From assembly GCA_024137785.1 (NCBI GenBank), contig JAHRHZ010000266.1, positions 124,001 to 188,000 of the forward strand: a DNA stretch of 64,000 nt, read 5' to 3'. The DNA is from Ginglymostoma cirratum. Lineage: Eukaryota. A program made the translations under genes and the position numbers. Positions 87 through 59,985 of the stretch are shown here, in pieces (positions within the stretch are counted from its first letter, which is position 1; each line of letters starts with the position of its first letter). The notes beneath the pieces were generated by a model. The model saw only the letters and a program-made list of their open reading frames with translations, was not told the DNA's origin and searched no databases.

Positions 87-139
87 CTTTCCTCTTTCTA
101 ACAAACATGATGTTTCTTAAGTACAGGAATCAGGCTGAG
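87..139 (-). pseudogene. Disabled paralogue of the gene B CTYANI exon
   Basis: ag/gtaagt sites intact but 53 nt instead of 54; reads QPDSCT* with TAA at the Tyr position. Confidence 0.8.
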
Positions 140-944
140 CTGTAATACAAACGGTATCCACTCTGAAACTGCCTTACTTCATCAGCTTTCTTTCTCCAGA
201 ATCAAAGGATCTTACAATAAGACACAATTCTGTGCAAACATCATAGCTTTACCACCGGAAAATGGTCGACGGGTTTCATTCGAATCAGACATCAAACTGT
301 ATTCTGAGTTTTTTGGACGTGTGGTCCCCCAATGGGCATGCCTTAAGGAGCGACTTAAAAAGGTGTAAAGAGAGTTGGAGAGGTTCAGATGGGATTCTCA
401 GACTCTTGCAGATTAAAAGTTAGGCACCAGAGACGTTGCTATTCCATTCCAGTTAAGCCAACATCGGCCATCTCTCTATAATGAGAGAACAACACTATGC
501 TCTCTGGGATAATGGTGAGTTTATATTTACTATAAGGGGTATGGAGGAGCAAGAATTGGAGGTAGGAAGTCGTCTCAATGGGTTGTAAGTGTACAAGTTT
601 AAATTTATCAACAATCCTCAGACAGCACCTTACAAACCCGCAACCACCTCCATCTAAAAATGCAATGCCAGCAGATAAACGGGAATACGGCCCTTATGAG
701 TTTCCCTCCAAGGGTCTTACCATCCTGACTTGGAAATATATTCTCGTACCTTCACTGTCGTCGGGTCAAAATCCTGGTATTCTGTCCCTGAAGGCATTGC
801 GGGTCTACCTACAACACATCTCCCGCAGCACTTCAAAAAGGCAGCTCACCAACAATTTCTCAAGAGGTCAACAAGAGATGGGCAATGAATGCTGCCCAGC
901 CAGTGACACAAATATCTCATGAATTAATGAAAATATACTTCCTG

Positions 945-3680
945 CCCCTTACCTCAAATTAATGCCCCACACTCCATCAGGGGGAAAACATCTTCATGTC
1001 GAACCTATCTATGCCCCTCATAAGTTTATGCATCTCAATCATGTCCCCCCGCAACCTCCTCTTCCCTGAGAAAAAGCAATCTATCCAATCTCTCTTCATA
1101 ATTGAAACTCTCCAAACCAGGTGACATCCTGGCAAATCTCCTCTGCACCCTCTCCAGATCTCTCCTATGATGTGGATTCCTGAACTGCACACAATTCTCC
1201 AGCTGTGGTCTAACCAATTTTTCATGCAGTTCCAGCAGAACCTTCCTGCTCCTACTTAAACCCTTTGCTTCAACTAAAAAAATGGAAGTATCCCATATGG
1301 CTTTTTAACCATGTTATCCAACTGCCCTGATACCTGAAGGGGAATGATGTAGATGCACACCAAGGTCCCTCTGATCCTTGGTATTTCCGAGGGTCCAACT
1401 GTTTGTTACACCTTCCTTTCCCTTCTTTGTCCTGCCCAAGTATATCACCTCCCAATTATCCAGATTGAATTTTATTTACCACTGATCGGGCCATCTGACA
1501 GCCTCCTGTAGTCTTGGGCTATCCCCCTCACTATTTACCACCCCAACTATTTGTTTATCATCTGGGAACCCACTGATCAACGGTCCGTCATTTAAGTCTA
1601 ACTCAATTCTATAAAGTACAAATAGCAAGGGCACCATCACTGACCCCTGTGGGATCCCACTAGACACAGATTTCCAGTCACAACAATGCCCCTTGACCAT
1701 CTCACTCTGTTTCCTGCCAGTCAGCTAATTGTGGATTTAAATTGCAAAATTCCCTTGGATCCCATAGGCTCTCACCTTTGCTAACAATCTCCCACTTGGG
1801 ACCTGATCAAAAGCCTTGCTGAAGTCCAAGAAGGTGTAAGAACATAAGAAACAGGTCCAGGAGTAGACCATCTGGCTACTCGAGCCTGCTCTGCCATTCA
1901 ATAAGATCATGGCTGATCTCTTCAAGGACTCAGCTCTACTAACCCACTCACCATAACCTTTAATTCCTTTACTGTTCAAAAATCTATCTACCTTTGCCTT
2001 AAAAAGATGACATCAAATGCATTGCCCTCATCTACACATCTGATCACCTCTTCAAAAGATTCAGTGAAGTTGTTAAGACATAACTTCTCCTGAACAAAAC
2101 CATGTTCATGATTGACCCCTGCCTCTTCATATGCAGATTCATTCTGTCCCTGAGAACTGCTTCCTATAGTTTCCACACCATCAAGTTTACACTGACTAGC
2201 CTGAAGATTCCCAGTTCATACCTTTCTCACTTCTTGAACAATGGTACCACACCGGTTGTCCTCCCATCCTCTTGTACCTCTCTTGTAGTCAGAAAGGAAG
2301 TGAAAACTTATTGCTAGTGCTCCTGATATTTCCTCCCTTGCCTCACTTAACAACCTGAGGTACATTTCATCCTGCCCTGGATATTTATCTATGTCTGAAC
2401 TCTATCAAAAACAATCTTAACCTAGTCAATCTCTCCTCGCATGCCAGACCCGCCGTCCCTGGAATTAGCCTGGTAAACCTTTGCTGCATTCCCTCAAGAG
2501 CAACAGCATCTTTTCTCAGAAAAGGAGACCAAAACTGCACACAATATTCCAGGTGTGGTCTCACCAAGACCCTGTAGAAACTGCAACAACGCAGCCCTGC
2601 TCCTGTACTCAAAACCTCTCGCAATGAAGGCCAACGTCCCATTTGCCTTCTTTACCACTGGCTGCACCTGCATGCTTACCTTCAGCAACTGGTGCACAAG
2701 GACTCCCAGGTCCCGCTGCACACTCCCCTCTCCCAATTTACAGCCATTCAGGCGGTAATCTGTCTTCTTGTTTTTGCTTCCAAAGTGAATAACCTCACAT
2801 TTATCCAAATTATACTGCATATGCTGTTGATTTGCCCACTCACCCAACGTGTCGAGATCATGCTGAAGGATCTCTGTATCCTTGTCACAGTTCACCTTCC
2901 AAGCCAATTTGTTATTATCTGCAAACTTGAAGATGTTACATTTTGTTCCTTCATTCAAATCATTAATATATATTGTGAATAGCTGGGGTCCTAGCACTGA
3001 TCCCTGCGGCACCCCACTAGTGACTGCCTGCCAAAGAGTACTAAGCCTGTGGAATTCATTACCACAGGAAGTGGTTGACGCCAAAACATTGAACATATTC
3101 AAGAGGTGATTCGATATAGCACTTGGGGCAAATGGGATCAAATGTTATGGGGAGAAAGCAGGGTTAGGCTATTGAGTAGGACTTATTTATAATAGCCAGG
3201 ATTATGAAGAATGGCGAAGCATTCTTAAAGGGCCAAATGGCCTCCTCATGCTCCTATCTTCTATGTTTTTATGTTTAAACTGGCCTATGTTTAAGCTCCT
3301 CTCTGACTACGCAAATTTAATTATATCACAGACCATCTCCCGGATATGTACACCCAAATCATCCCTCTTACCAGTGAACACCAACATAAAGTATTCATTT
3401 AGAACATGACCGACATCCTCTGGGTCGAAAGCACAAATTATGACCATGGACTTTTTACCCTTAGTGCACCATTAAAATAACTTAGAATTTTTCTTTATGT
3501 TATCTGCCAGTATACTTTCATATCTCCTTTTAGCTCTCCTAATCTCCCTATTAAATTCCCACTTTCACATTCTATAATCCTCCAGAAACTCCCACTGTTC
3601 CGACCTCTCAGCATCTGCCATAAGCATCCCTTTTCCTCTTAATCCAATGCTATGTATTCCTTGATATTCAGGGTTCACCG
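945..3680 (-). mobile_element. Degenerate CR1 LINE ORF2 with nested younger CR1 pieces
   Basis: Remnants HGFVQEKLCLNN, LDFSKAFD, SGIPQGSV, VRPQLENCVQF, LRGDMIE. Confidence 0.85.
2395..3274 (+). mobile_element. CR1 insertion with inverted 5' part (2395-3032 minus, 3033-3274 plus with 3' tail)
   Basis: SGVPQGSVLGP...FADN...[13 protein letters not shown] on minus, joined to RVLSLWNSLP and the ctatgtttttatgt tail on plus. Confidence 0.75.
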
Positions 3681-3732
3681 GGTTTGTTGGTCCCACTCTT
3701 TAGCCCTCCACTCTCCCTGTTTCCTTCTTTGA

Positions 3733-3925
3733 TGTGGAGATTCCAGTACCACACTGGGGTGGACAAAGCCAAAAATCAGACAACACCAGGTCCTAGTCCA
3801 ACAAGTTTATTTGAAATCACAAGCATTCAGAACATCTCACTGCAAATGACAAAGGAGCGGCTCTCCGAAAGCTGTAATTTCAAATAAACCTTTTGGACCA
3901 TAACCTGGTGATTTTTGACTATTTC
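3733..3925. mobile_element. Short fold-back element, probably Penelope pLTR-derived
   Basis: Inverted arms (caccaggt..gtccaa..gtttatttgaaat / atttcaaataaac..ttggac..acctggtg) around ggagcggctctccgaaagct. Confidence 0.5.
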
Positions 3926-4289
3926 CTTATTCACTACATCCCAAAGTATACCTGTTCTGGACTACATGTGACTTCAGTCCTGCAAAAGGACACTGGTTTA
4001 AGGTACAGTAGTTATTAAAGAATGAGAGGGGTTGTCAGCGAGCAGGTTTATACAGGGCTGCAAGGTGCCACATGCTCAAAGAGGAAGCCAATGTCATCAA
4101 TAAGTGATGGAAAGCAACTGTCAGTCTCAAAGATCACACTACTTGAAACCAAAAGAACTGCAGACGCTGTCAAAGATTACACTGCCGGAAGTCTGCATTC
4201 AGAAACATTGTACAGGATGATTTTAATTTTATTTTAGTAAATGGAGAGTACAGAAACAGATATTTCAATATAAAGAAACAGAGGTTTGC

Positions 4290-5960
4290 CTCCCCTCACT
4301 CCTGGAGGTGAGGAAGGAAATTGCTGGGGCCTTGTACAAAATCTTTGTATTCTGTTTAGCCACAGGAGAGGTCCCAGAGCACTGGAGAATTGCCAAAATT
4401 GTTCTTTTGTTTAACGGCAACAGAGGTAATCCAGGAACTTACAGGCTGGTGATCCTTATATCAGTGGTAGGGAAATTATTGGAGAAGATTATTAGGGACA
4501 GGATTTACTCACATTTTTAAAAATATGGACTTATTTATAATAGCCGGCATGGTGTTGTGTGGGGAGCTCATGTCTCACAAACTTGATTCAGTTTTTGGGA
4601 AAGTTTGATGATTGTTGGGGGCAGGGGAGTAGATGTTGTCAACATGGACTCTCATAAGGCCTTTGACAAGGTGCTTCATGGCAGGCTGATATGGAAGTTG
4701 AAATCACGTCAATCCGTGAGGGATGGTAAGATGGATACAGAATTGGCTGAGTCATAGAGACAGAGAGTAGAGGTGGAAGGGTGTTTCTGTGACTTGAGAT
4801 CTGTAGGCAGTGGTGTCCTGCAGGAATCAGTACTGGGACTCTATTGTTTAGTATTTATGTAAATATTTTGAAGGATAATGTAGATGGTGTGATTAATAAG
4901 ATTGCAAATGACACAAAGATTGGGGAAGTTGTGGACAGTGAGGAAGATTGCCAGAGGATACAGAAGAATATAGATAGGCTGGAGACTTGGCCGGAGAAAT
5001 GGCAGATAAAATTTAATCTAGACTAGTATGAGGTAATGCATTTTGGAAGGTCTAATGCAAGAGGGAAGTGTACAGTAAATGGCAGAATCCTTAGAAGCAT
5101 TAAGATAAAGAGATCGGAAAGTGCCAACTCCAGTGGGTAAAGTGGTCAAGAAGGCATACGACTTGCTTGCCTTTGGGACACAGAGTTTCAAGATTGGCTA
5201 CAAAATCAAAGCTGCTGGAAAATCTCAGCAGGTCTGGCAGCATCTGTGAAGTTAAAATCAGAGTTAACATTTCAGGTCCGGTGACCCTGCCTCAGAACTC
5301 TATTTTTTTCTTTCACAGATGCTGCCAGACTTGCTGAGCTTTTCCAGCAACTTTGTTTAGGTTCCTGATTTACAGCGTCCGCAGTTCTTTTGGTTTTTGT
5401 TCAAAGTTGACAAGTCATGTTGCAGCTGTATAGAAAGTTCGTTTGGCCACATTTGGAACACTGTGTCCAGGACTGGTCGCCAAACTACCAGAAGGACATG
5501 GAGGCTTTGGAGAGGAGACAGAAAAGATTTATCAGGTGTTTGCCTGGTTTATCTATGTGGAGAGAGTGGACCAACTCAGTCTGCTTTCACTTGAAGAGGC
5601 TGAGGGGTGACCTGACAGAAGTTTACAAAATTATGGGAGGTATGGTTAGAATGAATGATCAGAGTCTTTCACCCAGGATAGACATGTCGATTACTAGGGG
5701 ACATATATATATATCGTAAAAATGGAAAAGTTTGGAGGAAATGTGGGATGAAAATATTTTTACATGGAGGCTGCTAAGTGCTTGGAATGTGCTGCCAGAG
5801 GTGGTAATGGAGGCGGAAACAATGGCAACATTTAAGAAGCATCTTGACAGATACACAAATAGGCAGGGAATAGAGGGATTCGACAGTTCAGAAAGGCATC
5901 GTGTGTCGTCACAGACTCGATGGGTCAAAAGACCTTTTCCTGCGCTGCACTGTTCTTTGT
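4290..5960 (+). mobile_element. 5'-truncated CR1 LINE (paralogue at 39230-40740)
   Basis: VPEHWRIAKIV, KLLEKII, ANDTKIG, WPHLEHCVQ, WNVLPEVV. Confidence 0.9.
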
Positions 5961-6135
5961 TCCTGGTGTAGCCCCCCCGACTCCTTCATTCCTGGTGCAG
6001 AGTTCCCCTCACTTCCCTTGCAGATTCCCTTCGCTCCTGAGGTAGCTTCCTCCCCTCACAAATGGTTCAGCCTCCCCTCACTCTTGGTTCAGGCCTTCCT
6101 TCACTCTTGGTGTGGCCCTCCCTTAATTCCTGACA
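5960..6135 (+). repeat. Degenerate ~25-bp tandem repeat (cctcccctcactc-tggtg); also at 40735-40885
   Basis: Visible periodic units in both duplicate copies. Confidence 0.6.
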
Positions 6136-6799
6136 TCTCTCTGCAATTATATAGAGCCTTGGTGAGACCCCATCTGGAATCTGGTGAACAGATCTGATTT
6201 CCACATCTACGACAATGTCTACTTGTTAAAGAGGAAGGGTCTGAGGAAAGGTCACTGGACCCGAAAATTTAGCTGCTTTTTCCTTTACAGATGCTGCCAG
6301 ACCTGCTGAGCTTTTCCAGCAACTTTGTTTTTGTTAAAGAGGGAGTGTAACAAAGATTAACTAAACTAATCCCAGGGATGGAATGATTGTCCTTTGAAGC
6401 GAGATTAAGTAGACTGAGCCTTTTTTCTACACAAATCAGAAGAACAGGAGGTGATCTTTCAATCAGATCACATCCTTACAGGGATTGACAGTGTTGATAC
6501 ACTGTCTTGAACCAGGGAACACAGCCTCAGAATGAAGGATAGACCCTTAAGGGAGAGGCTGTTTAGGACTGAGATGAGAGGGAATTTATTGTCGCAAAGG
6601 AGGTGAATCTTGAGAAATCTCTAGCCAGAGAGCTGTGAAAGCTTAGTCATTGAGTATCTTCACGAATTAAATGGTAAATTTCCAGACATTAAAAACATTG
6701 AGAGGTATGGGGATAGTGCAGGAAAGTGGTGTTGAACTACTAGACCAGACATGATCCTATTGATTGGTGGAGCATCTTGTCCCTAGTGGGGAAAGTCCA

Positions 6800-7460
6800 G
6801 ATACACACTCTCCTGACTCTCTTACTCCTTGTGGCTGTGGAAATCTTCCAAAGACACACTTCGGCTTTAAATCTTCCAGTGGAACAGCTTACATGGTCTT
6901 TGTTGTTAGACAAATCCAAGTAAAATGTCAAGCACAACACAAGAAACTCTTTATTACATTTCTCAACCTGACCAAAGCAGATAACTTAGTAAATCACTTG
7001 ATGGAACAATCCTGCAACTGCTTTGTGATGACATGACTGCTTCTGAAACAGATGTCTTCACTGATCAGGATCAGAGTCAAGCAACGCTGTGTGACAGCTC
7101 CACATTATCTATAGTCTACCAAACAGTGACTGTGTCCTCTGGTGTCAGGATTAGATATTACCAAGATAGAAATCTCTTCAACCTCAGACTCATCCGTGCC
7201 AAAATAACATGACCACAACAAACAGACATGAGATACAGTATGCACTGAGAACTTCACTGTTGGTTTTGCATTCTGCACCAGACTAGCAAACCACCCTTGA
7301 CCTCTTCAAACTTGCAAAAAGACACTTGACTACTGCTTGAGTGTTGCCAAAACAAAACTCAAATCACCCATCAGTTAAATATTCTACCTCCCGTATATGT
7401 TAAAACTCTGGAATACAATTAGCACACTCGATATCTTGGGAGGCACCTCCCTCAAAAGGG
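6800..7460 (+). mobile_element. RTE-clade LINE RT remnant (paralogue at ~41445-42090)
   Basis: LPKTHFGFKSSSGTAYMVFVVRQIQVKCQAQHKKLFITFLNLTKA resembles the RTE motif LPESQCGFR..RGT.DMIF.RQ.QEKC.EQ....F.DLTKAFD. Confidence 0.7.
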
Positions 7461-8554
7461 TGCCCAAGGCTGAGATCACTGGCTCTGTCCATCACTGCAA
7501 GTCTGAGAACAGTCCATAGGCGACCACGAAGGGACTCTGGTTTTCAATGTCCACTGGGGAAGAGAGATCCAACTCTGGATCAGCAGAGACAGCTCAACCT
7601 TCTAGAAACTATGGCAGTGATTGTATGACAACATTGGCTCTCCACAAGTCAGCAAAAAGTCCTTGTCTTCATCACCAGCCCATGTAAATGTTGGTGGACC
7701 CACAATGCTGTTTGGGATGGAATTGCAGGATTGTGACCAAGTGACACTGAAGGAACAAGGATATATTTCCGAGTTAGGATGGTGACTGGAATGAAGGGGA
7801 ACTTGCAGGTGATGGTGATCCCATGTATCTGTAATCATGAACAAGAATGAAGTTGACTCTGTTGCCACAGTTCGGACACTGAATGGCATTTGGACACTTT
7901 CCCTGTTCTTCCAAAAAGACAATCTTCAGAAGCTTTTTTTTTATTTTTGAAACATTTCATTGCATCTGTGTGTTTGGGACTTCTTCAACTCAAAAGACGA
8001 CATGTTGCAGCTTATGAGCCTTTGGACATCTTGCAGGATAATTTAAAATGTTACAATTTGCAATCACCTTGTTAAATACAAATGATTCTGAGGCTCAGAG
8101 CGCACCAATAATATGTTACAGTCTCTGACAGGTCCAAGTCACATTAATATCTCTTGTGTCACACATGTCTCCTGTGGAATGTCATTCCAATGTGGCAGCA
8201 AAATAGGTAAAATCTGCTTCCTGTTTGGTAGCATCATACATGACAAAAGGAGGCCCCTCATCCCATTGTGCCTGTGCCAGCCGTTTGAAATTAGTCACAC
8301 TCTCCGTGTTCTTTCCTAATTCTGTGCATTGCCTCTGTCATGTGACCTCTGGTTCTTTTCTCAATCATCTTTATCTGTACATTTACTCACTGACTGTCCC
8401 GCCACTGGAAATAGTTTCTCATGACTTTCTTTAGAAACAGTCTTCTTGAATTGACACGGCTCAATCAAATCTCCCCTGAATCTTCACTGCTCTAAAAGCA
8501 ACACCAGTTCTTCCAAAGAACTGAGGTCTTTCTTCTCTGGAACCATTCTAGTTA

Positions 8555-11409: not shown

Positions 11410-12660
11410 GAGTCACAGAGTCATAGCGATGTAGAGCATGGAAACAGGCCCTTCAGTCTAACTTGTCCATGCCGATCAGATAGCCTAAATTATTCTCATC
11501 CCATTTGCCAGCATTTGGCCTATATCCCTTGAAAGCCTTCCTGTTCATATACCATCCCAATGCCTTTTAAATGTTGCAATTGTACCAGCCTCCATCACTT
11601 CCTCTGGCAGTTCATTCCATACACGCACCACCTTCTGCATGAAAAAGTTGTCCCTGAGGTCCCTTATAAATCTTTCCCTTCCCACCCTAAACCTATGCCC
11701 TCTAGTTGTGGACTTCCCTACCCTGGGCAAAAGACCTTGGCTATTCACCCTATCCAAGGCCCTCATGATTTTATAAACTCCTATAAGGTCACTCCTCAGA
11801 CTCTGACGCTGCAGGGAAAATAGCCCTAGCCTGTTCAGCCTCTCCCTATAGCTCAATCCCTCTAACCCTGGCAACATGCTTGTAATTTTTTTCTGAGTCC
11901 TTTTGAGTTTCTCAAAATCTTTCCAAGAGCAGGGAGACCAGAAGTGAATGCAGTATTCCAAAAGTGGCCTAACCAGTGTCCTGTATGTTAGCAACATTAC
12001 CAACCAACTCCTTTACTCAGTGCACTAACCATTAAAGACGAGCATTCCAAATGCCTTCTTCACTACCCTGTACTCCACTTTCAAAGAACTATGACCCTGC
12101 ACTCCAAGGCCTTTTTGTTTGGTAACAGTCCACAGGACCTTATCATTAAGTATATAAGTGCTGCAATGATTTGCATTTCCAAAATGCAGTGCCTCACATC
12201 GATTTAAATTAAACTCCATCTGCCATTTCTCAGCACATTGGCCTGTCTGATCAATGTCCCATTGTACTGTGAGATAACCTTCTTCGTTGCTCACTACACC
12301 ACCAATATTGGTGTCATCTGCAAACATATCAACCATACTGACTTTATTCACATCCACATCATTTAGGTAAATGACAATAAGCAATGGATCAAGCACCGAT
12401 CCTTGCGGCACACCGCCGGAAACAGGCCTTGAGTCCGAAAAGCAATCCTGCTTCACCACCCTCTGTCTAATATCATCAAGCCAGTAATGTATCCAAATGG
12501 CTGGTTCCCCCTGTATTCCATGTGATCTAATCTTTCTAACCAGTCTATCATGTGGAAATTTTCAAATGCCTTACTGAAGTCCATTTACGCCACATCCACT
12601 GCTCTCCATTCTTCAGTCATCTTTGTCACTCCTTCAAAAAACTCCAAATTAATGAGTCAT
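11410..12660 (-). mobile_element. 5'-truncated CR1 LINE
   Basis: ORFs 12025-12459 (GVPQGSVL, FADDT) and 11545-12003 (RPLLEYC...WNELPEEV). Confidence 0.9.
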
Positions 12661-12934
12661 GTTATGTCTGAACAGCGAATAGTGTGCCAATAACCATGTC
12701 CTGTTGCTCCACACATCATCAGGAACTGTACAAACGTACAACAAACCCAATGAGATCACCCCTGACAGACTGCTACTCAGGACAGAAGAAAACCACATCA
12801 GGAATCTTCAGTAACAGTGAAAATAATTCCATAAATCAATATTCCCAGTAATGAAAGTGGTGAAAAGAAAATATCCCTAATTAATGCACCTTAACTGTAC
12901 CCCTTCAAAACCACATGCACACTCACCCATATAT

Positions 12935-19705: not shown

Positions 19706-20053
19706 CATCTACCTGCAGCTGTGTCTCTTTCCGGATCAGATACTGGTAATCGTGTCTTGATCTGTATTCCACCTGACACAGGTAAGTGTGATTGTCCCTC
19801 ACACTCAGCTGGTTTATCCTGGTCAAGGTGTTTCCTTCCTCTGGGTTCCCAATGAGCGCGTATCGATTTCCACCATTTACAGTTGTCCAATTTCCCTGTG
19901 ATTGGGCTGTAAATGTAACAATGTGTTGGTAGGGCTCCTTCCTCATCCAGGTAACAGTGGTCAGAGTGGGGTAGCCCTCAGTCCTGAAAATACAGGGTAA
20001 AGTAACAGTATCTCCCTCTGTCCCATTCACCACTAAAACCTCTCCCTGAGCAG
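19706..20053 (-). pseudogene. Gene A V-set Ig exon 2, Siglec-15-like, reading frame intact
   Basis: Acceptor tttgtcctttgctcag, donor G|gtaaga; 348 nt, phase 1-1; B-strand LPC, WMRKEPY, RYALIGNP, DNHTYLCQVEY (ORF 19674-20072). Confidence 0.9.
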
Positions 20054-23533: not shown

Positions 23534-23902
23534 CATTCACTTCCAAATCTCTTCCAAACGGTGTTTTAAAACTGCCGATACTGAGCTCCAGATGACACCA
23601 ATAGATACCAGCATCCTCCTGGCTCTGTCCCTCCATCATTATTGAGACATCTTTGTTGCTGATATTATCCATGAATCTGAATCGTCCACTGTATCACATC
23701 CTCACACAGCTCACCCTGGGAATGGTCTGGACCAGGATAGATACAGTCAAAGATAACACCTGTGTCAGATTGAATCCATATCACGGAGCCGATGAGTGTA
23801 AGATTAGTGCCTGGGTGGAGCTGCAGAGTAAGACAGCAGAACTTCGTTCCTCAACCCTCACATCATTCACGACTGTCATGGACCAATCAGGAGCAGAATT
23901 CG
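23534..23902 (-). pseudogene. Gene A V-set Ig exon 1, Siglec-15-like, two frameshifts
   Basis: Strong pyrimidine acceptor (ctctcccctcacag), donor G|gtgcgg. Corrected translation: NSAPDWSMTVVNDVRVEERSSAVLLCS/HPGTNLTLIGSVIWIQSDTGVIFDCIYPGPDHSQGELCEDV/YSGRFRFMDNISNKDVSIMMEGQSQEDAGIYWCHLELSIGSFKTPFGRDLEVN. Matches Siglec-15 motifs WSM, LPCxFTHP, VFxC, ELC, GRFR, YxCxxE. Confidence 0.85.
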
Positions 23903-28408: not shown

Positions 28409-30774
28409 CAATGTTTTCTCATATCTCTCTTTGTTCTCTTAATTGCTTCTTGAGTTCCCCCTGCATTTCTTGTATTCCTTTAAGGGCCTATGTTATTTTG
28501 CCCATTTCGTACCTGTTATATGACTCTCTTTTCCTTTCGATCCAGTCTTGAGTATTCCCAGACATCCCCAGTTCTCTGGGCTTGTTCCTCTTTCATTTCA
28601 CAATTTCTAGAAAATTCTCGATCCTCTGGCCTATCGCTGGTTTTCCTGCTGTGTGTGCATTAATTTTTGTTTGAATACTCCCCTTGACCATCTTTGTTAA
28701 CCTCAGGTGGTTTATCCTTCTCATGAAGTCTTTCTTTGACCAGAATAAATTCTAGCTCAGCATTAGGAAATATCTCCGTAAATGTCTGCCATTGTTCATC
28801 CTACTTTCCATTTTCTCCATCGGCTAGTTTCCTAGCTCACTTTACACAATGTCTTTTCTTCATTCCTCTATAATTGTCTTTATTTGAGGACACTACTCTT
28901 AGACTGAGGCTGCTCTCCCTCAAACTGATTTGAAATTCTATAATGTTGTGATTGCTATGCCCTGTAGGATCCTCAAATACAGGAACGCTTCATAATTTTC
29001 CCTTATTACACATCACTAGATCTAAATAACCTGTTACTGGACAGATTCTGCGATGCGCTTCTCTAAGACACAATCCCTTCTGAATTCAAGACATTAATTT
29101 CTCTTATTATCCTTGCCTATCTGATTTGTTGAGTCAATATGCAGATTAACATGACCCATGACAATTGTAGTACCTTTCTTGCACACCTCCACTATTTCTA
29201 GGTTTATAATTTTTCCTGCAGTGAGGCAATTTTTGGCCTATAAACAACTCCCACCAGTGATTCCTTTGCCTTGATAGTCCTTACTTCCACCTAAACCAAT
29301 TCCACATCATGATCATTTGCATTTATATTATTCCTCACCACCACACAATGCGATCCCACCTCCTTTCACCTTTTGTCAATTTTTCCAGACAGATGAAGAG
29401 TCCAGAGTACTAATTTTTTAACATCCTTTCTTACCTTGGTGCTAATTTCCACTACACCTTTCCGTATATATTTTCTACACCTTCCCATCACACTTTGATT
29501 ATCATTCACCTCTTCAATAGTCTGCACTTTCAACTCTCTCATTTCTTTTTAATTGGTTGAGAGGGAACCTGATAGAATATGTACGATTTTGAGTGCACGG
29601 GCAGGATTGATAAGAAAGTGTTTTTTTTTTCATTCGTACAGGGACCAGTAACTATCTATATTGATTTAGATAAGAGATAGAGGGTGACAGGAGAGTTAAG
29701 GAGATTTTTTTTCACCCTTAAAGGGTGATAAGAGTCTGGTGCTCACTGCCAGAAAACGCGGTTGAGTTAGACATGCTAGTAACATTTGTATTTAGATGTT
29801 CATTTGTGCTTCTATTTGCCTCGTCAGTAGCCTCCACCTCTGCTCGCTCTCATCTTTTTGAGTTTTCAAACTTCCCTCCAACTGAATCCCACACCCATCC
29901 GTCTTGATCCAGTCTTGAGTATTCCCAGACATCATGGGCTTGTTGTTCTTTAATTTCAGAATTTCTAGAAAATTCTCAATCCTCTGGCCTATCGCTGGTT
30001 TTTCTGCCCATCCCCACCCTCGTCCCTACCTAACTAATTCATTTAAAGCCCTCAATAAGTTGCTTATGAAGGCTTTTAGATCAACAGCTGTAAAATGGGA
30101 CAAGTAGAGTCTGATGGTTGTTGACTGATACAGATATGATGACCTAAAATCTTCTCTCTTTATGCTGTAAGTGTCTAAGATTCCATGAATCTACAATGAA
30201 AACTTGAAGGACTGAATCTTCACACTAGAAATAGTTAGTTGTCACTGTCTTCATTTTTTGTAAAGCAGATAATTTCTCCTTGACGAAGAAACCACGGTGA
30301 AGGAAAAGGCACATCGCGCTAAACAGCAACAGGTTTAGGAATTAAATGCCAGGCAGCAGACAGGTCATCAAGGAGGAGGCAATTACATGATTAACAAAAT
30401 GGATTTGAAAGGTCAGTATTAGAAAGTACGTACTGTAACCCCGCACCGAGACTGACAGGAGGACCGCAGAGAGACAAACATAGAGAGATCCCATTGTCAA
30501 TACTTCACGATTTCACCCTTCTCACGTGCTTACTCTTGTACTTCACATAAAAATAGGGAAGATACTTGACATCTTGCCAAAGTAATGTTGGTCAATTTTA
30601 CATCATATGAACAACAAATGGGAAGTGTGTGTACGGTCAGTAGCAGCTGAGAGAATGACAAAGCTGTTGTGAAACTGAGGCACCAACCACAACAACAGTT
30701 GAGAAAAGGAGATGCTACATCAGCTTCAAATACAATTCTCAAAATCATCAGTGTCAACATCAAACACACTGAGA

Positions 30775-36543: not shown

Positions 36544-36575
36544 CTATGTGTTCACAATGGCTGCATAGGTTACAT
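36544..36575 (-). CDS. Gene B terminal coding exon with ITIM, (N)VTYAAIVNT*
   Basis: Branch ctgac plus ttctgtctctttcaaacag acceptor; phase 1; V-x-Y-x-x-I motif then tandem TAG TAG stops. Confidence 0.85.
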
Positions 36576-37079: not shown

Positions 37080-37121
37080 TCTCTTCTGAATCAGCAACTG
37101 AGAGAGTCTTGCCATCTTGAA
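37080..37121 (-). CDS. Gene B cytoplasmic exon 6, (V)QDGKTLSVADSEE(N)
   Basis: Acceptor ttattctttttcag, donor A|gtgagt; 42 nt, phase 1-1; 88-bp intron from the previous exon. Confidence 0.8.
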
Positions 37122-37123
37122 CT

Positions 37124-40100
37124 GAAAAAGAATAATCTGTTAGTAAAGAGGATGTATTTTAAATGTTTAGAAACATCACTATGTAGAAAAAAAATTTGTA
37201 GATGGTTACCTTTTCTGTTACTGTCAAACACGATGTTGGCATAGGTACAGGAATCAGGCCGAGCTGTAATACAAACAGTATCCACTCTGAAACTGCCTTA
37301 CTTCATCAGCTTTCCTACTCTAGAATCAAAGAATCTTACAGTAAAACAGAATCCTGTGTTTACATCACAGCTTTACCATTGGAAAATGTTCTATGATCTC
37401 CATGTGAATCAGACATCAAACTGTATTTGGAATTATTTGGACAGGTGGTGCTCCATTAGGCATGTCTTAAGGAGCGACTTAGAAGGGGGAAAGAGAGTTG
37501 AAGAGTTTTATATGGGATTCTTAGAATCTTGGAGATTGAAAACATTGGCACCAGTGATTTTGTTATTACAGTCAATTTAAACCACCTACCAGTCCGCTCT
37601 CTCCAGTGAGAGATCAGCGTTATGCCCCCTGGGATTAAGGTAAGTTTATATTTACGGTAAGGCATATGGAGGAGCCAGAACTGGAGGCAGGAGGTAGTCT
37701 CAATGGATTGTAGGTGTATGAGTATATTACAGAGACAGACCCACTGCTGTGGAGAAATTTGAACCTGAGGACAATAATCTTTAATTTATGCTTTTTTCAA
37801 CTTGTGAGCAGTTCTGGGTACCACATCTTGGGAAGTATAGTTTGAGCTGAGAAAGAAAGTGGTGCGGAATAAAGATATCTGCTCTCACACAGTTCAATTA
37901 CAAGTAGTTCTGTCACAAATTAAGTTTGTATCTCTTTGGACTGGAAGGTTTGGGGGTGATTTGATTGAAGTTCTCAAGGTAAGGAGATCATAAATGATCT
38001 TTCGGCATTCACCAAAGTGGGATGACTCAGATGACACGGGGATTCCTGATTCGATGATTACCAATGCTTACACAGGGTTTCCAATTTTCTCATAGTCCCA
38101 TGGTTCAGGTCACAAACCCTGCTCCCAGCACTCCTGAGCCTGGCCACTCCATTGCAGAGGAAACCCATCCTGCTCATCCAAAATTTTCATCCAGTTGGTC
38201 CAGGATTTTAAAGAGTCATGGTTCACAGCATCTCAAAGATATTGGCCAGCCAGTGATACCCAGGGCTCATGAGTGAATAAAAAAAGTCCTGCCCCTTACC
38301 GTAAATCAATCCCCCCTGGCCATTTAGCATTCCATCTGAGGAAATGCTTTTCATGTCTCCCCTGTTTATTCCCTTCATAGTTTTATGCCTCTCAATTGTC
38401 CCCTCTCAATCTCCTCTGACCTAAAGAAAACAGTCTGTCCAATCTCTCTTCAGAACTGAAACTCTCCAGCCCAGGCAACATCCCGGTAAATCTCCTCTCC
38501 ACCCTCTTCAGTGCAATCACATCCCCTCTATTATGTGGGATTGATGTAATGATTAATGTAATGATTTCTGAAGAAGGGTCCAGACCAGAAATGTCAGCTT
38601 TCCTGGTCCTCTGACGCTGCTTGGCCTGCTGTGTTCATCCAGCTCCACACCTTGTTATCTCAGATTCTCCAGCACCTGCAGTTCCTACTATCTCCTTCTA
38701 TAATGTGGATTCCGGAACCGCATACAATACACTAGCTGTGGCCTGACCAAATTTTCATTGAGTTCCAGCATAATCTCCCTGCTCTTACCTAAACTCTCTG
38801 CCTCAACTAATAAAGGAAAGTATCCCATAAATCTTTTTAACCACTTCATCCACCTGTCCTGTTTTGCTGGTCCCACTCTTTTTCTTTACTGGCACTGTAC
38901 TATCCCTGTTTCCTTCTTGAATGCATCTCAGTACATACCTTGTCTGGCCTGCCTGTGACTCCAGTCCCACAAAAGGACACTGGTTTAAGGTGCACTAAGT
39001 GTTAAAAAATGAGAGGGGTTGTCAGCGAGCGGATTTATACAGGGCTGCAAGGTGTCACATGCTCAAAGAGGAAGCCAATGTCATCAGTAAGTGATGGAAA
39101 GCAACAGCCAGCCTCAAAGATTACACTGCTGGAAGTCTGCATTCAGAAACATTTTACAGGATGATTTAATTTTATTTTCTTAAATGGAGAATACAGAAAC
39201 AGATTTTTTTAATATAAAGAAGCAAAGATTTGTCTCCCCTCCATCCTGGAAGTGAGTGAGGAAGTTGGTAGAGGCCTTGTGCAGAATCTTTGTATTCTAT
39301 TTAGTTATGGTACAGGTCCCAGAACACTGGAGAATAGCCAAAATTGTTCCTTTGTTTAACAGCAGCAGAGGTATTCTGAGAAATTATAGGCCAATGATGT
39401 GTCAGTGGTAGGGAAATTACTGGAGAAGATTCTTAGGGACAGAATTTTCTCATATTTGAAAAAATATGGATTTCTTAACAATAGGCAATATGGCTTTGAC
39501 CAGTGAAGATCGTGTCTTACAAACTCGATTCAGCTTTTTGAGGAAGTTTGATGGCTGATGAGGACAGGGGAGTAAGTGTTGTCAACATTGACTTTCATAA
39601 GGCCTTTGACAAGGTTCCATTATGGCAGGCTGATGCAGAAGTTGAAGTCACGCAGATCTGCGGAGGGATGGTAAGGTGGATACAGACTTGGCTTAGTCAT
39701 AGAAGACAGAGAGTAGTAGTGGAAGGGTGCTTTTCTGACTGGATATCTGTGAGCAGTGGTGTTCAGCAGGGATCAGTGCTGGGACCCTGTTATTTATTAT
39801 ATATGTAAATATTTTGAAGGATATTGTATATGTTCTGATTAATAAGTTTGCAGATGACACAAACATTGGGGAACTGTTGATGGTAAGAAGGATTACCAAA
39901 GGATACAGCAGAATATAGATTGGCTGGAGACTTGAGCTGAGAAGTGGCAGATGGAATTTAATCCGAACAAATGTGAGATGATGAATTTTGGAAGGTCTAA
40001 TGCAGGAGTAAAGTATGCAGTAAATGACAGAACCCTTAGAAGAGATAACATGCAGAGGGATCTGGTTGTGCAGGTCCACTGTTCCCTGAAAGTGGCAATG

Positions 40101-43100
40101 CAAGTGGATAAGGTGGTCAAGAAGGCATTTGGCTTGCTTGCCTTTGGGACTTAGAGGTTCAAAACTGGCAAATCATGTTGCAGCTGTATCGAAAGTTAGT
40201 TTGGCCACATTTGGAATATTGCGGGCAGTTCTGGTTGCCACACTAACAGAAGGATATGAAGGCTTTGGAGAGGAGATAAAAAAGATTTAGCAGGTTTTTG
40301 CCTGGTTTGGAGGATATTTGCTATGAGAAAAGACTAGACACATTTGGTTTGTTTTCACTTGAATGTCGGAGGCTGAGGGGTGACCTGGTAGAAGTTTACA
40401 AAATTATGAGATGCATGGATAGAATGAATATTTGGAGTCTTTTTCCCAGGGTAGAAGAGCCAATTACTTGAGGACATACATTTAAGATAAGAAGGAGGAA
40501 GTTTAAAAGAAATGCAAGAGGATTTTTATTTAACAGAGGGTGGTAAGTGCTTGGAATGTGGTGGTGGTAGAGGCAGGTTCAATCGCAACATTTACGAGGC
40601 ATCTTGACAGATACATGAAGAGGCAGGGAATAGAGAATTGGACAGCAGGGGGGCGAAAGGTTGTTCGTTTAGAAAGGTGTCAGTATCAGCACAGGTTTGA
40701 TGGGCCAAAAGGCCTTTTCCTGTGCTCTACTTTCTTTGTTCCTGGTGCAGACTTCCCTCATACCTGATGTAAACTCACCTCACTCCTGGTGCAGACATCC
40801 CTCCCCTCATTCCTGATATCAGCCTCCCCTCACTCCAGGTTCAGGCCTTCCTTCATTCTTGGTGTAGCCTTCCCCTAATTCCTGATGTCTTTCTGCAATT
40901 ATATAGAGCCTTGGAGAGAACGCACCTGGAATGTGGTGAGCAGATCCGATTTCCACATCTGTGACAATATCTACTTGTTCCAGAGGGAGTGTAACAAAGA
41001 TTCACCAAACTAGTTTCTGGGATGGTATGATAGTCTATTTATTCCCTCATCAAAGGACAGAGACTTTATTCTCTGGAAATCAGAAGAACGAGTGGTGATC
41101 TCATTCAAACAAACCATATTCTTACAGAGATTGACAGTGTTGATATGCTGTCTTGAACCAGGGAACACATCCTCAATGAGGAATAGGCCCTTATGGACAG
41201 AGATGAAAGGAAATTTATCTCAAAGGAGGTGAATTTTGGAAATTCTCTACCCCAGAGAGCAGTGGAACCTTAATATTGAGTATGTTCACAATTGAGATCG
41301 ATAGATTTCTAGACATTAAAAACTTTGAGGGGTATGGGGATCGTGCAGGAAATTGGTGTTGAAATACAAAATCAAACATGATCCTATTGATTGGTGGAGC
41401 ATCTTGTTCCTAGGGGGGAAAGAACTGATACACATTCTCCTGACTCTCCTACTTACTGTGGCTGTGGAAATCTTCCCAAAGACACACTGTAGCTTTAAAC
41501 CTTCCGGTGGAACCTTTGACATGCCTTTGTTGTCAGAAAAATCCAAGTAAAATGTCAAGCACAACACCAGAAACTCTGTATTACATTTCTCAACCTGACC
41601 AAAGCAGATAACTCGGTAAAGAAACTCAGTCCAAGAAACTTCTTCCAAATCCAGCAAATCTGACCTTCTGGAACAGATGTCTTCAAGGATCAGGACCAGA
41701 GTGACATCCCCTGTGTGATAGTTCCATATGATCTTTAACCTACCAAACAGTGGCTGTGCCCTCTGATTTCGGGATTAAATACTGCATGGATAGAAAACTC
41801 TTTAACCTCAGTCTCATCCGTGCCAAAATAACATGACCACAACAAACAGACATGAGATACAGTATGCACTGAGAACTTCACTGTTGGTTTTGCATTCTGC
41901 ACCAGAATAGCAAACCACCCTTGACCTCTTCAAACTTGCAAAAAGAGACTTGGCCACTGCTTGAGTGTTGCCAAAACAAAACTCAAATCACCCATCAGTT
42001 AAATATTCTACCTTACATATATATTAAGACTCCAGTATATATTTAGCAGTCACGATAGTTGGGAGGCACCTCCCTCAAAAAGGTGCCCAGGGGTGAGATC
42101 ACCGGGTCTGCCCATCACTGCAAGTCTGAGTCTAGCCCATAGGTGACTGAGACAGCACTCTGTTTCTCAATGTCCACTCCAGAAGTGATCCAACACTGGA
42201 TCAGCTGAGACAGCTCACCTTTTTAGAAACAATGGCTATGATTGTATGACAACATAGGCTCTCCACAAGTCAGCAAAAAGTTCTTTTTTTCATCACCAGA
42301 CCATGTAAATGTTGGTAGACCCACAATGCCATATGGGATGGAATTGCAGGATTGTGACCCAGAGACAGTGAAGGAACAATGATATATTTCCAAGTCAGGA
42401 TGGTGCATGACTTGGAGGGGAAATTGTAGGCGGTGGTGATCCCATGTATCTGTAGTAGTAAACAGGAATGCAGTTGACTTCATTGTCATGGTTAGGACAC
42501 TAAACAACATTTAGACACTTTCCCTGTTCCTCCAAAAAGACAAACTTCAGAAGCTTTTATTTCTTTATTTTTGAAACATTTCATTGCTTCTGTGTGTTTG
42601 GGACTTCTTCAACTCAAAAGCCACATGTCACAGCTTGTGAATCTTTGGTCATCTGCAGGGTGCTTTATAATGTTTAAATTTGCAATCACCTTGTTAAATA
42701 TAAATCATTTGAGGCTCAGAGCTTATCAATAAGCTGTTCCAGTCACTGACAGGTACAGGTCACAGTTAATTGTCTTGTATCACACATGCCTCTTGTGGAA
42801 TGTCACTCCCATGTGGCAGCAAATTAGGTAATATCTGCTTCCTGTTTGGTCGTATCATGCATGATAAGAGGCGGTCACTTAGCCCACTGTGCCTGTGTCA
42901 CCCATTGAAACAGCAAATGAAATTAGTCACACTCCCCGTGTTCTTTCCTGATTCTGTGCACTGACTCTGTCATGTGACCTCCGGTTCGTCTGACCTGAAG
43001 CCAATCACTTTTATCTGTGTACATTTACTAACTGACTGTCCTGCCACTGGAAACAGTTTCTCATGACTTACTTTATAAAGATTCTTCTTGATAAGGCACA

Positions 43101-43193
43101 GCTCAATCAAATCTCACCTTCATCTTCTCTAGTCTAAAAACACCATTTCCCCTGAAGATCTGATGTCTTTCTTTTCTGGAACCATTCAAGTTA
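37124..43193. repeat. Segmental duplication, copy B
   Basis: Same orientation as 1-8554, offset ~35-37 kb; differs by copy-specific insertions and deletions. Confidence 0.95.
37210..37263 (-). CDS. Gene B cytoplasmic exon 5 with tyrosine motif CTYANI, (P)RPDSCTYANIVFDSNRK(V)
   Basis: Acceptor gtttgtattacag, donor AAG|gtaacc; 54 nt, phase 1-1; splice sites conserved in the paralogous copy at 87-139. Confidence 0.85.
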
Positions 43194-47921: not shown

Positions 47922-47957
47922 GGTCTTCTGAAGCACTGATTGTGAATATCTTGTCAC
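47922..47957 (-). CDS. Gene B cytoplasmic exon 4, (G)DKIFTISASED(P)
   Basis: Acceptor tttgtctttgttaaag, donor C|gtgagt; 36 nt, phase 1-1; 93-bp intron from the previous exon; resembles exon 37080-37121. Confidence 0.75.
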
Positions 47958-48050: not shown

Positions 48051-48098
48051 CTGTTCTGTTGCTGTCAATCTCGGCATAGAAGCTGGAACCGTCCTGAT
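48051..48098 (-). CDS. Gene B cytoplasmic exon 3 with ITIM-like SFYAEI, (D)QDGSSFYAEIDSNRT(G)
   Basis: Acceptor tttctgttacag, donor CAG|gtaaat; 48 nt, phase 1-1; similar to exon 37210-37263 (Y-A-x-I ... DSNR). Confidence 0.85.
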
Positions 48099-51657: not shown

Positions 51658-51719
51658 CTGGAGCAGATGGCTGTTGGGCCTGATCAGTCCTGGGAATGCT
51701 GGACAAATCTGGGTCATTC
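51658..51719 (-). CDS. Gene B cytoplasmic exon 2, (R)NDPDLSSIPRTDQAQQPSAP(D)
   Basis: Acceptor gtgtgtttttcag, donor CAG|gtactg; 62 nt, phase 2-1, exactly restoring the frame after the 40-nt exon. Confidence 0.75.
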
Positions 51720-53490: not shown

Positions 53491-53613
53491 ATCAACCACT
53501 CGAATGTCAACCTGTCATTTCCCTCTTCATCTGTCCAGATCACTTTCCCACACTGAGTGTTCAAGCAGCTTCTTAAAAGGACAAACCACATTAAGCAGCT
53601 CATCACCAGGGGG

Positions 53614-53807
53614 AGAGAGACAATAGGTACTGCAGATGCTGGAGAATCCGAGATAACAAGGTGTGGACCTGGATGAACACAGCAGGCCAAGCAGCATCAC
53701 AGGAGCAGGAAAGCTTGACGTTTCAGTCTAGGCCCGAAATGTCAAGCTTTCCTGCTCCTATGATGCTGCTTGGCCTGCTGTGATCATCCAGCTCCACACC
53801 TTGTTAT
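53614..53807. mobile_element. Fold-back Penelope family 2 pLTR derivative
   Basis: Near-perfect inverted arms; TSD ctcatcaccaggggg (53599-53613, 53808-53822). Confidence 0.85.
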
Positions 53808-53914: not shown

Positions 53915-53954
53915 CTTTTCAAAGATGTAGTCTGCTCTATTTTCTGTGAATACC
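53915..53954 (-). CDS. Gene B cytoplasmic exon 1, (G)YSQKIEQTTSLK(R)
   Basis: Branch-like tactaat plus ttttattcctttag acceptor; donor AAG|gtagag; 40 nt, phase 1-2; open and phase-compatible with both neighbours. Confidence 0.75.
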
Positions 53955-57749: not shown

Positions 57750-58760
57750 TTTTATCAGGGACAAACTCGAAAGGGGGACCTGGGTGTACATGTGCATAAA
57801 CCACTAAAAGTGTCACTGAACGGTCACTGGACTTGAAACGTTAACTCTGTTTTCTCTTCACAGATGCTTTCAGACCTGTTGAGTTTCTATTTTTGTTTAT
57901 TTCAGGTCTTCAGCAACCACAGGTCTTTGTTTTATATTACTGAAGGTGTCAGGGCTAGTGAAGAAAGCAGTTTATAAAAGATGTTGTATCCCATGTGTTG
58001 TTAATAGGGTTATGGAGTACTAGAGTAAGAAGGTTGTGCTGAGATAGCAAGAACTGAAGATGCTGGAGTCAAAGATAACAAAATGTGGAGCTGGAGGAAC
58101 ATTGCAGGCCAGGCAGCATCAGCGGAACAGGAAAGCTGACGTTTTGGGTCAGGACCCTTCTTCAGAAATGATGCTGCCTGGTCTGCTGTGTTCCTCCAGC
58201 TCCACACTTTGTTAAAGTTGTGCTGAACTTGTTAAGACACTTGTTAGACCTCAGCTGGAGTATTGTGTACAGTTCAAGCCACTGCACCTTAGGAAAGATG
58301 TGAAGGATGGGAAAGAGGACAGAAATGATTCATAATGATGGTTCCAAAGATGAGGAACTTTGGTTGTGAATGTAGATTGGATAAATTGCGACTGCTTTCT
58401 TTATATTTTCCTTGTAGGAAATGAGAAGAAATTTTCGGTATTGAAAATCACAGCTAACAAGAAACTTTCCACTCATGAAAGGATTGAGAACAAGAGGAAA
58501 CATTTAAACGAGTTGATCAAAGAAGCACAAGAGACGTGAAAAAATTACTTTTAAACACACTGGACTGTGAGGCTTGAGATGTGGTGGAGGCAGGTTCAAT
58601 TGAAATATTCAACAGAGAAGCAGACTGTTATCTAAATTGAAAGAATTCAGAGTGTTACAGGGAAGAGGCAGGAGTATGACACTAAGTGAGTTGTGCATTT
58701 AGAGAACCAGAGTGGACACAATGAGCTGAATGGCCACTTGCTGTGCTCTAGGGATTCTGT
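57750..58760 (+). mobile_element. Degenerate CR1 3' part with nested pLTR derivatives (~57815-57940, 58043-58213)
   Basis: VRPQLEYCVQF remnant; TSD a(g/a)gttgtgctga around the hairpin. Confidence 0.7.
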
Positions 58761-58999
58761 GTTTCTTCACATTTTCACAATTTAGAGACTAGACAGCAGA
58801 AAGCACAGCCACCAATGATAGAGCAAAGAAAATTGATGTACAAGGGGCTCAAGTTGAACAAAGGCAGTTTTGGAGAATTCAAGGGCACCGACGTGTTACA
58901 GAGATAGGGATGGAGAGGCATGAAGATAAAACAAGCTCTTCGTCACTAACATAATAGAACTCAGGAGTCTGAGGCCTACAATATGCCTGAGACATCCTG

Positions 59000-59330
59000 T
59001 ATGTTCAGTCTAGGTGACTCTTCATTAGAGCTGAAGTGAAGTGTGGAGGGGGCAGCATTTATGTAATATTTGGGGAGCTGGGATTTGGAGTGCTGGAGGA
59101 GAAAGGATGTTGATAGTTCAGATTAAGTGATTGACATGTTAATCTGAACTGTGAACATCCTTTCTCTCCCAGCACTCCAAACCACTCCCCAACTATAGCA
59201 TAAATGCTGCTCCCTCCACTCTTCACTTCAGCTCTGATGATGAGTCATCTTGACTTAAAACATTAGCTTACCCTCTCTCCATGGAAACTGTCTGTGTCGC
59301 TGTGATCCCCAGCATTTCTTATTTTCAGTC
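59000..59330. mobile_element. Fold-back element of a further pLTR family with hammerhead remnant
   Basis: 59010-59130 is inverse to 59140-59255; gct-ctgatga-tgagtcatcttgactt-aaaacatt-agc. Confidence 0.6.
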
Positions 59331-59874
59331 CATATTGCCATTCCACCCCTAGATATTGCTTTGTTATTCAGACTATCTGAGCCACGATGTCCATGCCTTT
59401 ATGCAGCAAACTCTCTAAACCCAATTTAATAATAAAAACACACAAGAGAATCATGTTGAATTTTAGGTTCCTTTCTGTTCTATTGAGATTCCGTGCCAAG
59501 TGGGAATGAATGGAATAGGTGTGGTCTGTTGGGCTTCTGTCAAATGGAAGTGAATGAAAAGACATTTTGGTGCAATGAGATTTGACAGTAATGGGGAGTA
59601 GAATGGGGATTGGTCCATCGGAGTTCAATACAATGGTCTGAATGGCCTTGCTTGTGAAACAGCCACAATGTTAAATTACTAGTGGCCAATACTTATTGAA
59701 CAGGCCACTTTCACCCAACCTCCATCACCACCAAAGGCAAAGTCAGTGTCTTCAAAGAATGAGTGGAAGAGGAGAGAGTTTATGAGAGAAAATTAATTCA
59801 GGGTCATCGTTTGTTGCTGTTTCAACCAACACAACCATATTGTTCTATTAAACCTCACTCTCTACAGAACCTAC

Positions 59875-59985
59875 CTCCTTTCTTCCTGAAAATGATGAGG
59901 ACAATGATGAGGATGAAGAAGATGAGCAGGATGCTGAGCAGTGGGGTGACCAGCTGATATTTGATAGTGGACTCAGTCCTCTTCA
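59875..59985 (-). CDS. Gene B (ITIM-bearing Ig-superfamily receptor): transmembrane exon, (V)KRTESTIKYQLVTPLLSILLIFFILIIVLIIFRKKG
   Basis: Acceptor ttctttccattttgtag, donor GAG|gtaggt; 111 nt, phase 1-1; ~22-residue hydrophobic stretch with no charged residue, then RKK stop-transfer. Confidence 0.9.

Follow-up and report, generated by a model that had tools for sequence, protein, structure and literature searches.

The 64,000-nucleotide stretch of Ginglymostoma cirratum DNA analysed here (contig JAHRHZ010000266.1, positions 124,001 to 188,000; hereafter the window) contains two tandem loci, gene A and gene B, which are probably members of an elasmobranch-wide receptor family that arose from the Siglec-15 lineage. 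Siglec-15 is regarded as a single, conserved and activating receptor from fish to mammals, while Siglecs that inhibit and evolve fast are taken to be an innovation of mammals, that of the CD33-related group. The plan of the shark family comprises a signal peptide, a first V-set domain of Siglec-15 type with the sialic-acid Arg (V1) and a second, classical V-set domain (V2), with no C2 domain. Two forms share this ectodomain: (i) one with an uncharged transmembrane (TM) segment and a tail of ~110 residues bearing three Tyr motifs, of which the last is a canonical immunoreceptor tyrosine-based inhibitory motif (ITIM), and (ii) one with a short-tailed TM segment whose Lys belongs to a PLG.K motif resembling the one in Siglec-15. 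Gene B would then be an inhibitory member of which the window covers the 3' half, intact, while the leader and V exons lie past position 64000, a proposition that we hold jointly with the family assignment and with the same good confidence; gene A is, as its exons read, largely a pseudogene.

Both loci emerged from a six-frame reading of the window and tblastn searches with database relatives. The exons were treated singly, and borders and phases were checked for all 12 of them (Table 1). There are no N runs in the window and every receptor feature lies on the minus strand, gene A extending from 30494 to before position 1, downstream of gene B. Self-BLAST reveals a collinear duplicate shared by the two loci, with pieces 77-88% identical and ~82% identity over the longest, in agreement with the first-pass annotation, which had described two same-strand loci sharing a duplicated block.

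Gene B runs from 59985 to 36544 in eight exons, with AG/GT borders throughout and compatible phases. Its TM exon, the sole convincing hydrophobic exon of the minus strand in a hydrophobicity scan, is 64% identical to the TM segment of the whale-shark protein P0011 and 82% to that of zebra-shark P0273; the core has no charged residue and hence not the TM Lys of Siglec-15 orthologues. The juxtamembrane stretch YSQKIEQTTSLKR is common to gene B and P0273 (100% identical), and the C-terminus matches those of P0007, P0204, P0206 and P0273. Under the consensus (I/V/L/S)xYxx(L/V/I), used here for motif calls (PMC7226832), the first and third Tyr motifs, SFYAEI and VTYAAI, qualify as ITIMs, and gene B thus combines the two hallmarks of an ITIM receptor, an uncharged TM segment and at least one cytoplasmic ITIM. 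Relatives keep the first motif as SFYVEI, ILYAEI or CTYADI, while the Tyr of the second and of the third motif is invariant in 15 aligned relatives, with the Cys/Thr preceding the second Tyr nearly so. The uncharged TM segment and three Tyr motifs ending in an ITIM that had been noticed at first reading are therefore present, in properly bordered exons.

Because the TM exon is entered in phase 1, at least one coding exon must lie upstream, and no V-type exon came to light between 59985 and 64000. This lack would suit an ectodomain unrelated to V1-V2, which we consider very unlikely in view of what the tail retrieves by itself. A search with the cytoplasmic tail alone (residues 300-410 of zebra-shark P0204) returned 15 proteins, all of which carry V domains of the family: 14 have precomputed V-set domains, and P0045, with no domain on record, has a V2-type segment when its sequence is read. 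P0273, the closest relative of gene B, has the order signal peptide-V1 (with Arg)-V2-TM-tail and shares ~78-100% amino-acid identity with the gene B exons, the first-motif exon standing at ~78% in the tblastn alignment. The first-pass annotation had tied ectodomain to tail through the exon at 87-139, a link that fails, this exon being a dead relic with a stop and a 1-nucleotide (nt) deletion in a gene that has no TM exon. Its broader proposal, that a Siglec-15-type V domain is wired to ITIM signalling, is borne out at the level of the family by the full-length relatives found with the tail alone.

The distribution of these relatives is wide within one group of animals. With V2 as query, HMMER recovered 156 relatives at E<=1e-3 among 1.84 billion representatives; with a skate member, 88 clusters were obtained, exclusively from sharks, skates and rays. 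The layout leader-V1-V2-TM-tail is seen in more than 80 annotated proteins of elasmobranchs. Full-length members, among them starry smooth-hound P0007, little skate P0012, electric ray P0013, zebra shark P0204 and P0273 and epaulette shark P0200, match the tail exon by exon, with the same exon-sized blocks and the three Tyr motifs. A chance resemblance can be set aside, as both this tail and the V1-V2 ectodomain are found again and again among the annotated proteins of numerous shark, skate and ray species.

The kinship to Siglec-15 is clearest in V1, which follows the Siglec-15 pattern WSM...LPC.FTHP...F.C...LC...RFRF.GN...Y.CRVEL with four Cys. A profile of 15 full-length ITIM members, compared with the PDB, had human Siglec-15 (7zoz) as its top match (E 1.4e-22 over V1), with all four Cys matched and Arg aligned on Arg; the runners-up on the V1 region, CD33 (E 3.5e-8), Siglec-8 and sialoadhesin, fell between E 1e-8 and 1e-4. 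By hhalign the best-scoring of all groups tried for V1 was the Siglec-15 V domains (191.6), compared with 129.4 for pIgR-like and 73.9 for HAVCR1-like domains. In a tree of 99 V domains, obtained by a quick search with Shimodaira-Hasegawa-like approximate likelihood ratio (SH-aLRT) support only and with the broken V1 of gene A excluded, V1 (SH-aLRT 100) falls inside a Siglec-15 V group (support 87) drawn from bird, mammal, frog, lungfish, gar, carp and chimaera. On these comparisons V1 is classed as a domain of Siglec-15 type, and the phylogeny by which the first-pass annotation had proposed to separate a Siglec from a non-Siglec origin places it with the former, apart from the pIgR-like group. 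Expansion of the Siglec-15-type V domain is not restricted to sharks: lungfish, with 2 and 7 V domains in tandem, gar, with 2, and axolotl have multiplied it as well (P0033, P0035, P0059, P0091).

V2 has a different history. As a single sequence it finds Siglec-15 7zoz as best PDB match (E 1.4e-8), with TIM-2 and pIgR close behind, and in the tree it forms its own clade (support 99) with the V2-like domains of other chondrichthyan Siglec-15-like proteins, including that of chimaera. By profile V2 lies nearest to the V2-like domain (171), next to Siglec-15 V (142.5), which is only moderately ahead of the pIgR-like domains (124.7). The V2-like domain takes the second position in P0028 and P0039 and the first in whale-shark P0062 and chimaera P0080, and its presence in this separate subfamily implies that the V2 module is older than the V1-V2 family. 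V2 is thus an old chondrichthyan V-set module, which may have branched off from the Siglec-15 V domain long ago; what had been taken for a duplicated Siglec-15-type V domain is a distinct, older V-set lineage and no recent duplicate of V1. The separate subfamily itself (P0028, P0039, P0062, P0080, P0092) combines a Siglec-15-type V domain, a V2-like V domain and a non-V Ig domain; a Lys-bearing TM segment is seen in whale-shark P0062, and in chimaera V-plus-Ig forms occur alongside V2-like-plus-Ig ones.

The family divides by its membrane anchors and tails. Besides the ITIM members there is a second set with the same ectodomain and a short-tailed TM segment containing Lys, for example ..LCIPLGVKLL.LLVMWI.., whose motif.PLG.K.L.LLV is common to bird Siglec-15 (VPLGIKVLILLV) and recurs without the Gly (IPLIK/IPLVK) in a whale-shark Siglec-15-like protein. 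After removal of near-duplicates, 25 V1 domains are of ITIM type and 22 belong to Lys-TM members, and the two forms are interleaved on the V1 tree, along which the tail type has changed 10 times or more; horn-shark P0199 and P0191 exemplify an ITIM/Lys-TM pair with related ectodomains. This, then, is a paired-receptor family of Siglec-15-type, presumptively activating Lys-TM members and ITIM members, and not the purely inhibitory one first suggested, the Lys-TM members being about as numerous. Of the 25 ITIM-type V1 domains, 24 retain the essential Arg, which is also invariant in the 15 aligned full-length ITIM members; in 9 of the 22 Lys-TM V1 domains it has given way to H, G, Q, Y, K or S, and the tree requires at least seven such changes. 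Arg loss is thus associated with the Lys-TM tail, suggestively only: the Fisher p of 0.003 is without phylogenetic correction, and there are only 6 phylogenetically independent pairs, which agree in direction and give a median p of 0.25. No Lys-TM exon was found in the window with the relatives' tails as queries; one candidate at 53660-53571 (E 0.29) falls in a dispersed ~130-bp repeat and was discarded.

These data also bear on the alternative that we are dealing with generic paired receptors of the Ig superfamily, akin to CD300, pIgR-like, MDIR or NITR, which kept a Siglec-15-like fold while binding protein or lipid ligands and not sialic acids. We judge this unlikely, although it retains appreciable weight. 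For V2, TIM/HAVCR1, PVR, pIgR and CD276 are matches of about the same quality as Siglec-15. The C2 domain is missing from the plan: none was found in P0007, P0206 or P0199, in which only V-set-type Pfam matches occur, whereas in the Siglec-15 of bird, chimaera and whale shark V is followed by a second, distinct Ig domain of non-V type (Ig_3/I-set, and weakly C2-set_2 in chimaera). NCBI names the members inconsistently (Siglec-15, -12, -10, sialoadhesin-like, CD33-like, pIgR-like, JAML, HAVCR1-like, uncharacterized). Measured by what defines a Siglec, the N-terminal V-set domain is of Siglec type, but C2 is absent and the essential Arg is found neither in the V1 (His) nor in the V2 (Gln) of the window, to which the losses in Lys-TM members must be added. 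Against a generic origin stand the near-complete retention of the Arg in ITIM members, together with the Siglec-15 Cys pattern, and the absence of any MDIR-named or Raja eglanteria protein among the relatives of the skate member. A derivation from the Siglec-15 lineage remains the account that we prefer.

Gene A shows how a member of this family can decay. Its leader conforms to the family pattern M.SLYVCLSAVLLSVSVRG and is joined in frame. The V1 exon, the pieces of which are 57-81% identical to family V1 domains, suffers two frame breaks, at ~23830/23817 and at 23688, and a straight reading meets stops at 23783-23781 and 23696-23694. The first break lies between CSST and HPG, where the relatives' CSFTHPDTNLTL suggests the loss of 4 nt in a ACCCACCCA repeat, while at the second 4-5 codons plus a number of nucleotides that is not a multiple of three have gone; the lesions look like deletions of 4 nt and ~14 nt, unlike homopolymer slips. 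In place of the essential Arg there is His (YWCHLEL). The 3' border of the exon was set by homology at AATG/GTGCGG, with an alternative donor at 23540; an internal splice (CC/GTGATA ... ACAG/T) would restore the frame, but was rejected, as deletion of the C-C'' strands makes a folded domain unlikely. The V2 exon is intact and encodes a classical two-Cys V-set domain (Pfam V-set E 1.4e-13), with Gln at the Siglec Arg position (YLCQVEY) and 81-83% identity to the V2 of bamboo- and epaulette-shark members, V1 being the more diverged of the two. Of the two Siglec-15-like V-set exons reported in the first-pass annotation, both are located where it had placed them, but V1 is a pseudo-exon.

The 3' part of gene A is in a worse state. 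The tail relic shares 79.6% identity with the corresponding exon of gene B, and the flanking introns share 80.5% and 84.9%; being no better conserved than its introns, the relic indicates neutral decay. No TM, juxtamembrane or other tail exon was found from 19706 to 140, whether with exon DNA and its flanks, short-peptide tblastn, the tails of nine relatives or a hydrophobicity scan. Candidate TM hits were dismissed, those at 12.9 kb as a GT microsatellite (a GT/GC-rich tract at ~12890-13000 that generates spurious hydrophobic reading frames) and those at 10.6 kb as lying inside repeats. In contigs of a related species, ~95% identical and from three independent samples, V2 itself carries a 4-nt deletion at 19780, consistent with which the reading of this DNA in the whale-shark model P0011 is partly out of frame; these contigs end at ~23656-23659 and do not reach the V1 breaks. 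The locus seems, from these alignments, to be degenerate in more than one species, through different lesions. Gene A can accordingly be described as a pseudogene for the most part, with leader and V2 intact, V1 inactivated and the TM and most tail exons lost, and it most likely makes no membrane receptor. Tandem loci with one decaying copy fit birth-and-death evolution, and the expanding tandem array that the first-pass annotation had envisaged finds its counterpart in a multigene family with two such loci here.

Isoforms that join the leader directly to V2, skipping V1, are annotated in the relatives P0271, P0272 and P0238 (..VRGY-T-AQG..), and the same junction in gene A (30434/20053) would be in frame and avoid the broken V1. 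Read-through of the V2 donor (19705-19674) would add GKKPFTRPSV before a stop; epaulette-shark P0215 ends in a homologous read-through (GKKPFPHSS...), which suggests that soluble V1-V2 forms exist.

One may then ask whether gene A is alive after all. Its leader, V1 and V2 could begin a longer multi-V receptor (V1-V2-V1-V2...) that continues past the window start, with the relic at 139-87 as intronic debris and V1 either mis-assembled or skipped. Epaulette and bamboo sharks do have annotated members with four V domains (P0163, P0164, P0165), P0011 has another V2 and a TM exon behind a gene-A-like leader and V2, the V2 of gene A retains strong splice sites in phases 1-1, and its V1 exon still measures a multiple of 3, to which the V1-skipping isoforms of relatives can be added. 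We nevertheless think it improbable, given that the V1 lesions are not of the homopolymer type, that V1 has diverged more than V2, that more than 33 kb would have to be spanned to reach the next V exons, and that P0011 is itself frame-shifted and the related species' copy carries the V2 deletion. Decay of gene A thus remains our preferred reading, on which, and on the family assignment, several observations weigh negatively. The two losses in V1 combined leave an exon length that is a multiple of 3, the lesions are known from one assembly, and gene A might, by its splice sites, still yield a V2-only or secreted product. Neither gene A nor gene B has RNA support, the sole RNA-like run having held transposon parts only. 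The V exons of gene B itself are outside the window, and the Arg position of V2 is occupied by Leu or Gln in those relatives that were aligned or inspected.

Table 1. Receptor exons, duplicated block and repeats of the window (positions in the 64,000-nt stretch; a slash marks an exon/intron border).
Feature	Position	Strand	Remarks
Gene B TM exon	59875..59985	minus	enters in phase 1; VKRTESTIKYQ-LVTPLLSILLIFFILIIVLIIF-RKKG; 22-residue core without charge
Gene B juxtamembrane exon	53915..53954	minus	GYSQKIEQTTSLK; phase 1 to 2
Gene B cytoplasmic exon	51658..51719	minus	RNDPDLSSIPRTDQAQQPSAP; phase 2 to 1
Gene B cytoplasmic exon, first Tyr motif	48051..48098	minus	SFYAEI; matches ITIM consensus
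Gene B cytoplasmic exon	47922..47957	minus	GDKIFTISASED
Gene B cytoplasmic exon, second Tyr motif	37210..37263	minus	DSCTYANIVF; ITIM-like, Cys at -2
Gene B cytoplasmic exon	37080..37121	minus	VQDGKTLSVADSEE; donor GTGAGT
Gene B last coding exon	36544..36575	minus	(N)VTYAAIVNT, then stop; VTYAAI is a canonical ITIM
Gene A leader exon	30434..30494	minus	MGSLYVCLSAVLLSVSVRGY; donor A/GTACGT, phase 1, in-frame junction
Gene A V1 exon, Siglec-15 type, disrupted	23534..23902	minus	by homology; DWSMTV..., HPGTNLTLIGSVIW...FDC...ELCEDVIQ, GRFRF...DAGIYWCHLEL
Gene A V2 exon, intact	19706..20053	minus	strong acceptor and donor ATG/GTAAGA; phase 1 to 1
Gene A tail relic	87..139	minus	paralogue of gene B exon 37263-37210; TAA at Tyr codon and 1-nt deletion
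Duplicated block, copy A	1..8554	n/a	self-BLAST; extends past window start
Duplicated block, copy B	37124..43193	n/a	self-BLAST; covers gene B intron and tail exon
Copies of ~130-bp repeat	19449-19579, 26435-26565, 30845-30970, 38564-38694, 44735-44865, 53612-53735, 58041-58170	both	
Reverse-transcriptase fragments, gene A introns	2494-3141, 12025-12459, 24966-25397	minus	Pfam RVT_1, E 6e-10 to 2e-6

The surrounding sequence is vertebrate DNA in which retroelement fragments, including reverse-transcriptase matches, are abundant. The dispersed ~130-bp repeat occurs in at least 7 copies that are 84-95% identical, and larger relatives of it are found at 26.4-28.4 kb and 44.7-46.0 kb; a 467-residue open reading frame amid these larger copies (26643-28046) has no Pfam match.

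How, then, does the family compare with receptors already described? Siglec-15 (vertebrate-wide; human 7ZOZ) consists of V and C2 domains, has a charged TM segment, couples to DAP12/DAP10 and depends on the essential Arg143 (PMC7799145, PMC7226832). The family shares with it the V1 signature with four Cys, the essential Arg in intact members and, in Lys-TM members, the PLG.K motif of bird Siglec-15. It differs in having a second V-set domain where Siglec-15 has C2, in being multigene (the 88 clusters above) where Siglec-15 is a single conserved gene, and in the uncharged TM segment and ITIM tail, with no DAP12-coupling Lys, that gene B has in common with roughly half the family; sharks, moreover, retain separate Siglec-15-like genes of the plan V(-V2-like)-C2-Lys-TM (P0062, P0028, P0039). 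With the CD33-related Siglecs, including the paired Siglec-5/-14 and -11/-16, the family has in common fast tandem duplication with pseudogenes, a membrane-distal ITIM together with an ITIM-like motif, activating partners that have Lys or Arg in the TM segment and a matching ectodomain, and repeated loss of the essential Arg. The two groups are not orthologous, the family profile matching CD33 far less well than Siglec-15, and they differ in the ectodomain (V-V and not V-C2(n)) and in the three Tyr motifs of the shark tail. The skate MDIR receptors, the nearest family described from cartilaginous fish (PMC3031540), are, like the teleost NITR/NILT and the CD300/pIgR-like receptors, multigene fish V-domain receptors with activating and inhibitory members (PMC3031540). 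Among the 88 relatives of the skate member there is no match named MDIR or from R. eglanteria, and V1 groups with Siglec-15 V domains, away from the pIgR-like group.

In the mechanism that we propose, V1 of an intact member would bind a sialylated ligand through the conserved Arg, by analogy with the Siglecs (PMC7799145, PMC7226832). Src-family kinases would phosphorylate the ITIM tyrosines, and the phosphorylated ITIMs would recruit phosphatases of the SHP-1/SHP-2 type and so damp leukocyte activation; the Lys-TM partners, with near-identical ectodomains, would signal through an adaptor of the DAP12 type. Sialic-acid binding by an intact V1 is in this scheme inferred from the Siglec precedent. 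A survey of fish Siglecs, covering bony fishes only, suggests that cartilaginous fish lack CD33-related Siglecs. Tentatively, and with somewhat less than even confidence, we suggest that cartilaginous fish independently built an equivalent of them from the Siglec-15 lineage, in which the ITIM members would keep the Arg as a self-recognition brake, while the Lys-TM partners would repeatedly lose it as decoys or counter-measures against sialylated pathogens, in convergence with primate Siglec-5/-14 and -11/-16.

Full-text searches returned no literature linking Siglec-15 to shark, elasmobranch or chondrichthyan species, and the papers that name both Siglec-15 and cartilaginous fish concern unrelated topics only. 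The V1-V2 gene family of sharks and rays is apparently undescribed so far, even though its genes are already in public annotation, under a dozen inconsistent names. The family may do in cartilaginous fish what the CD33-related Siglecs do in mammals. If this is true, paired sialic-acid-sensing receptors would have arisen independently in an early-branching lineage of jawed vertebrates, and the family would offer a testable entry point to innate self/non-self discrimination in sharks.

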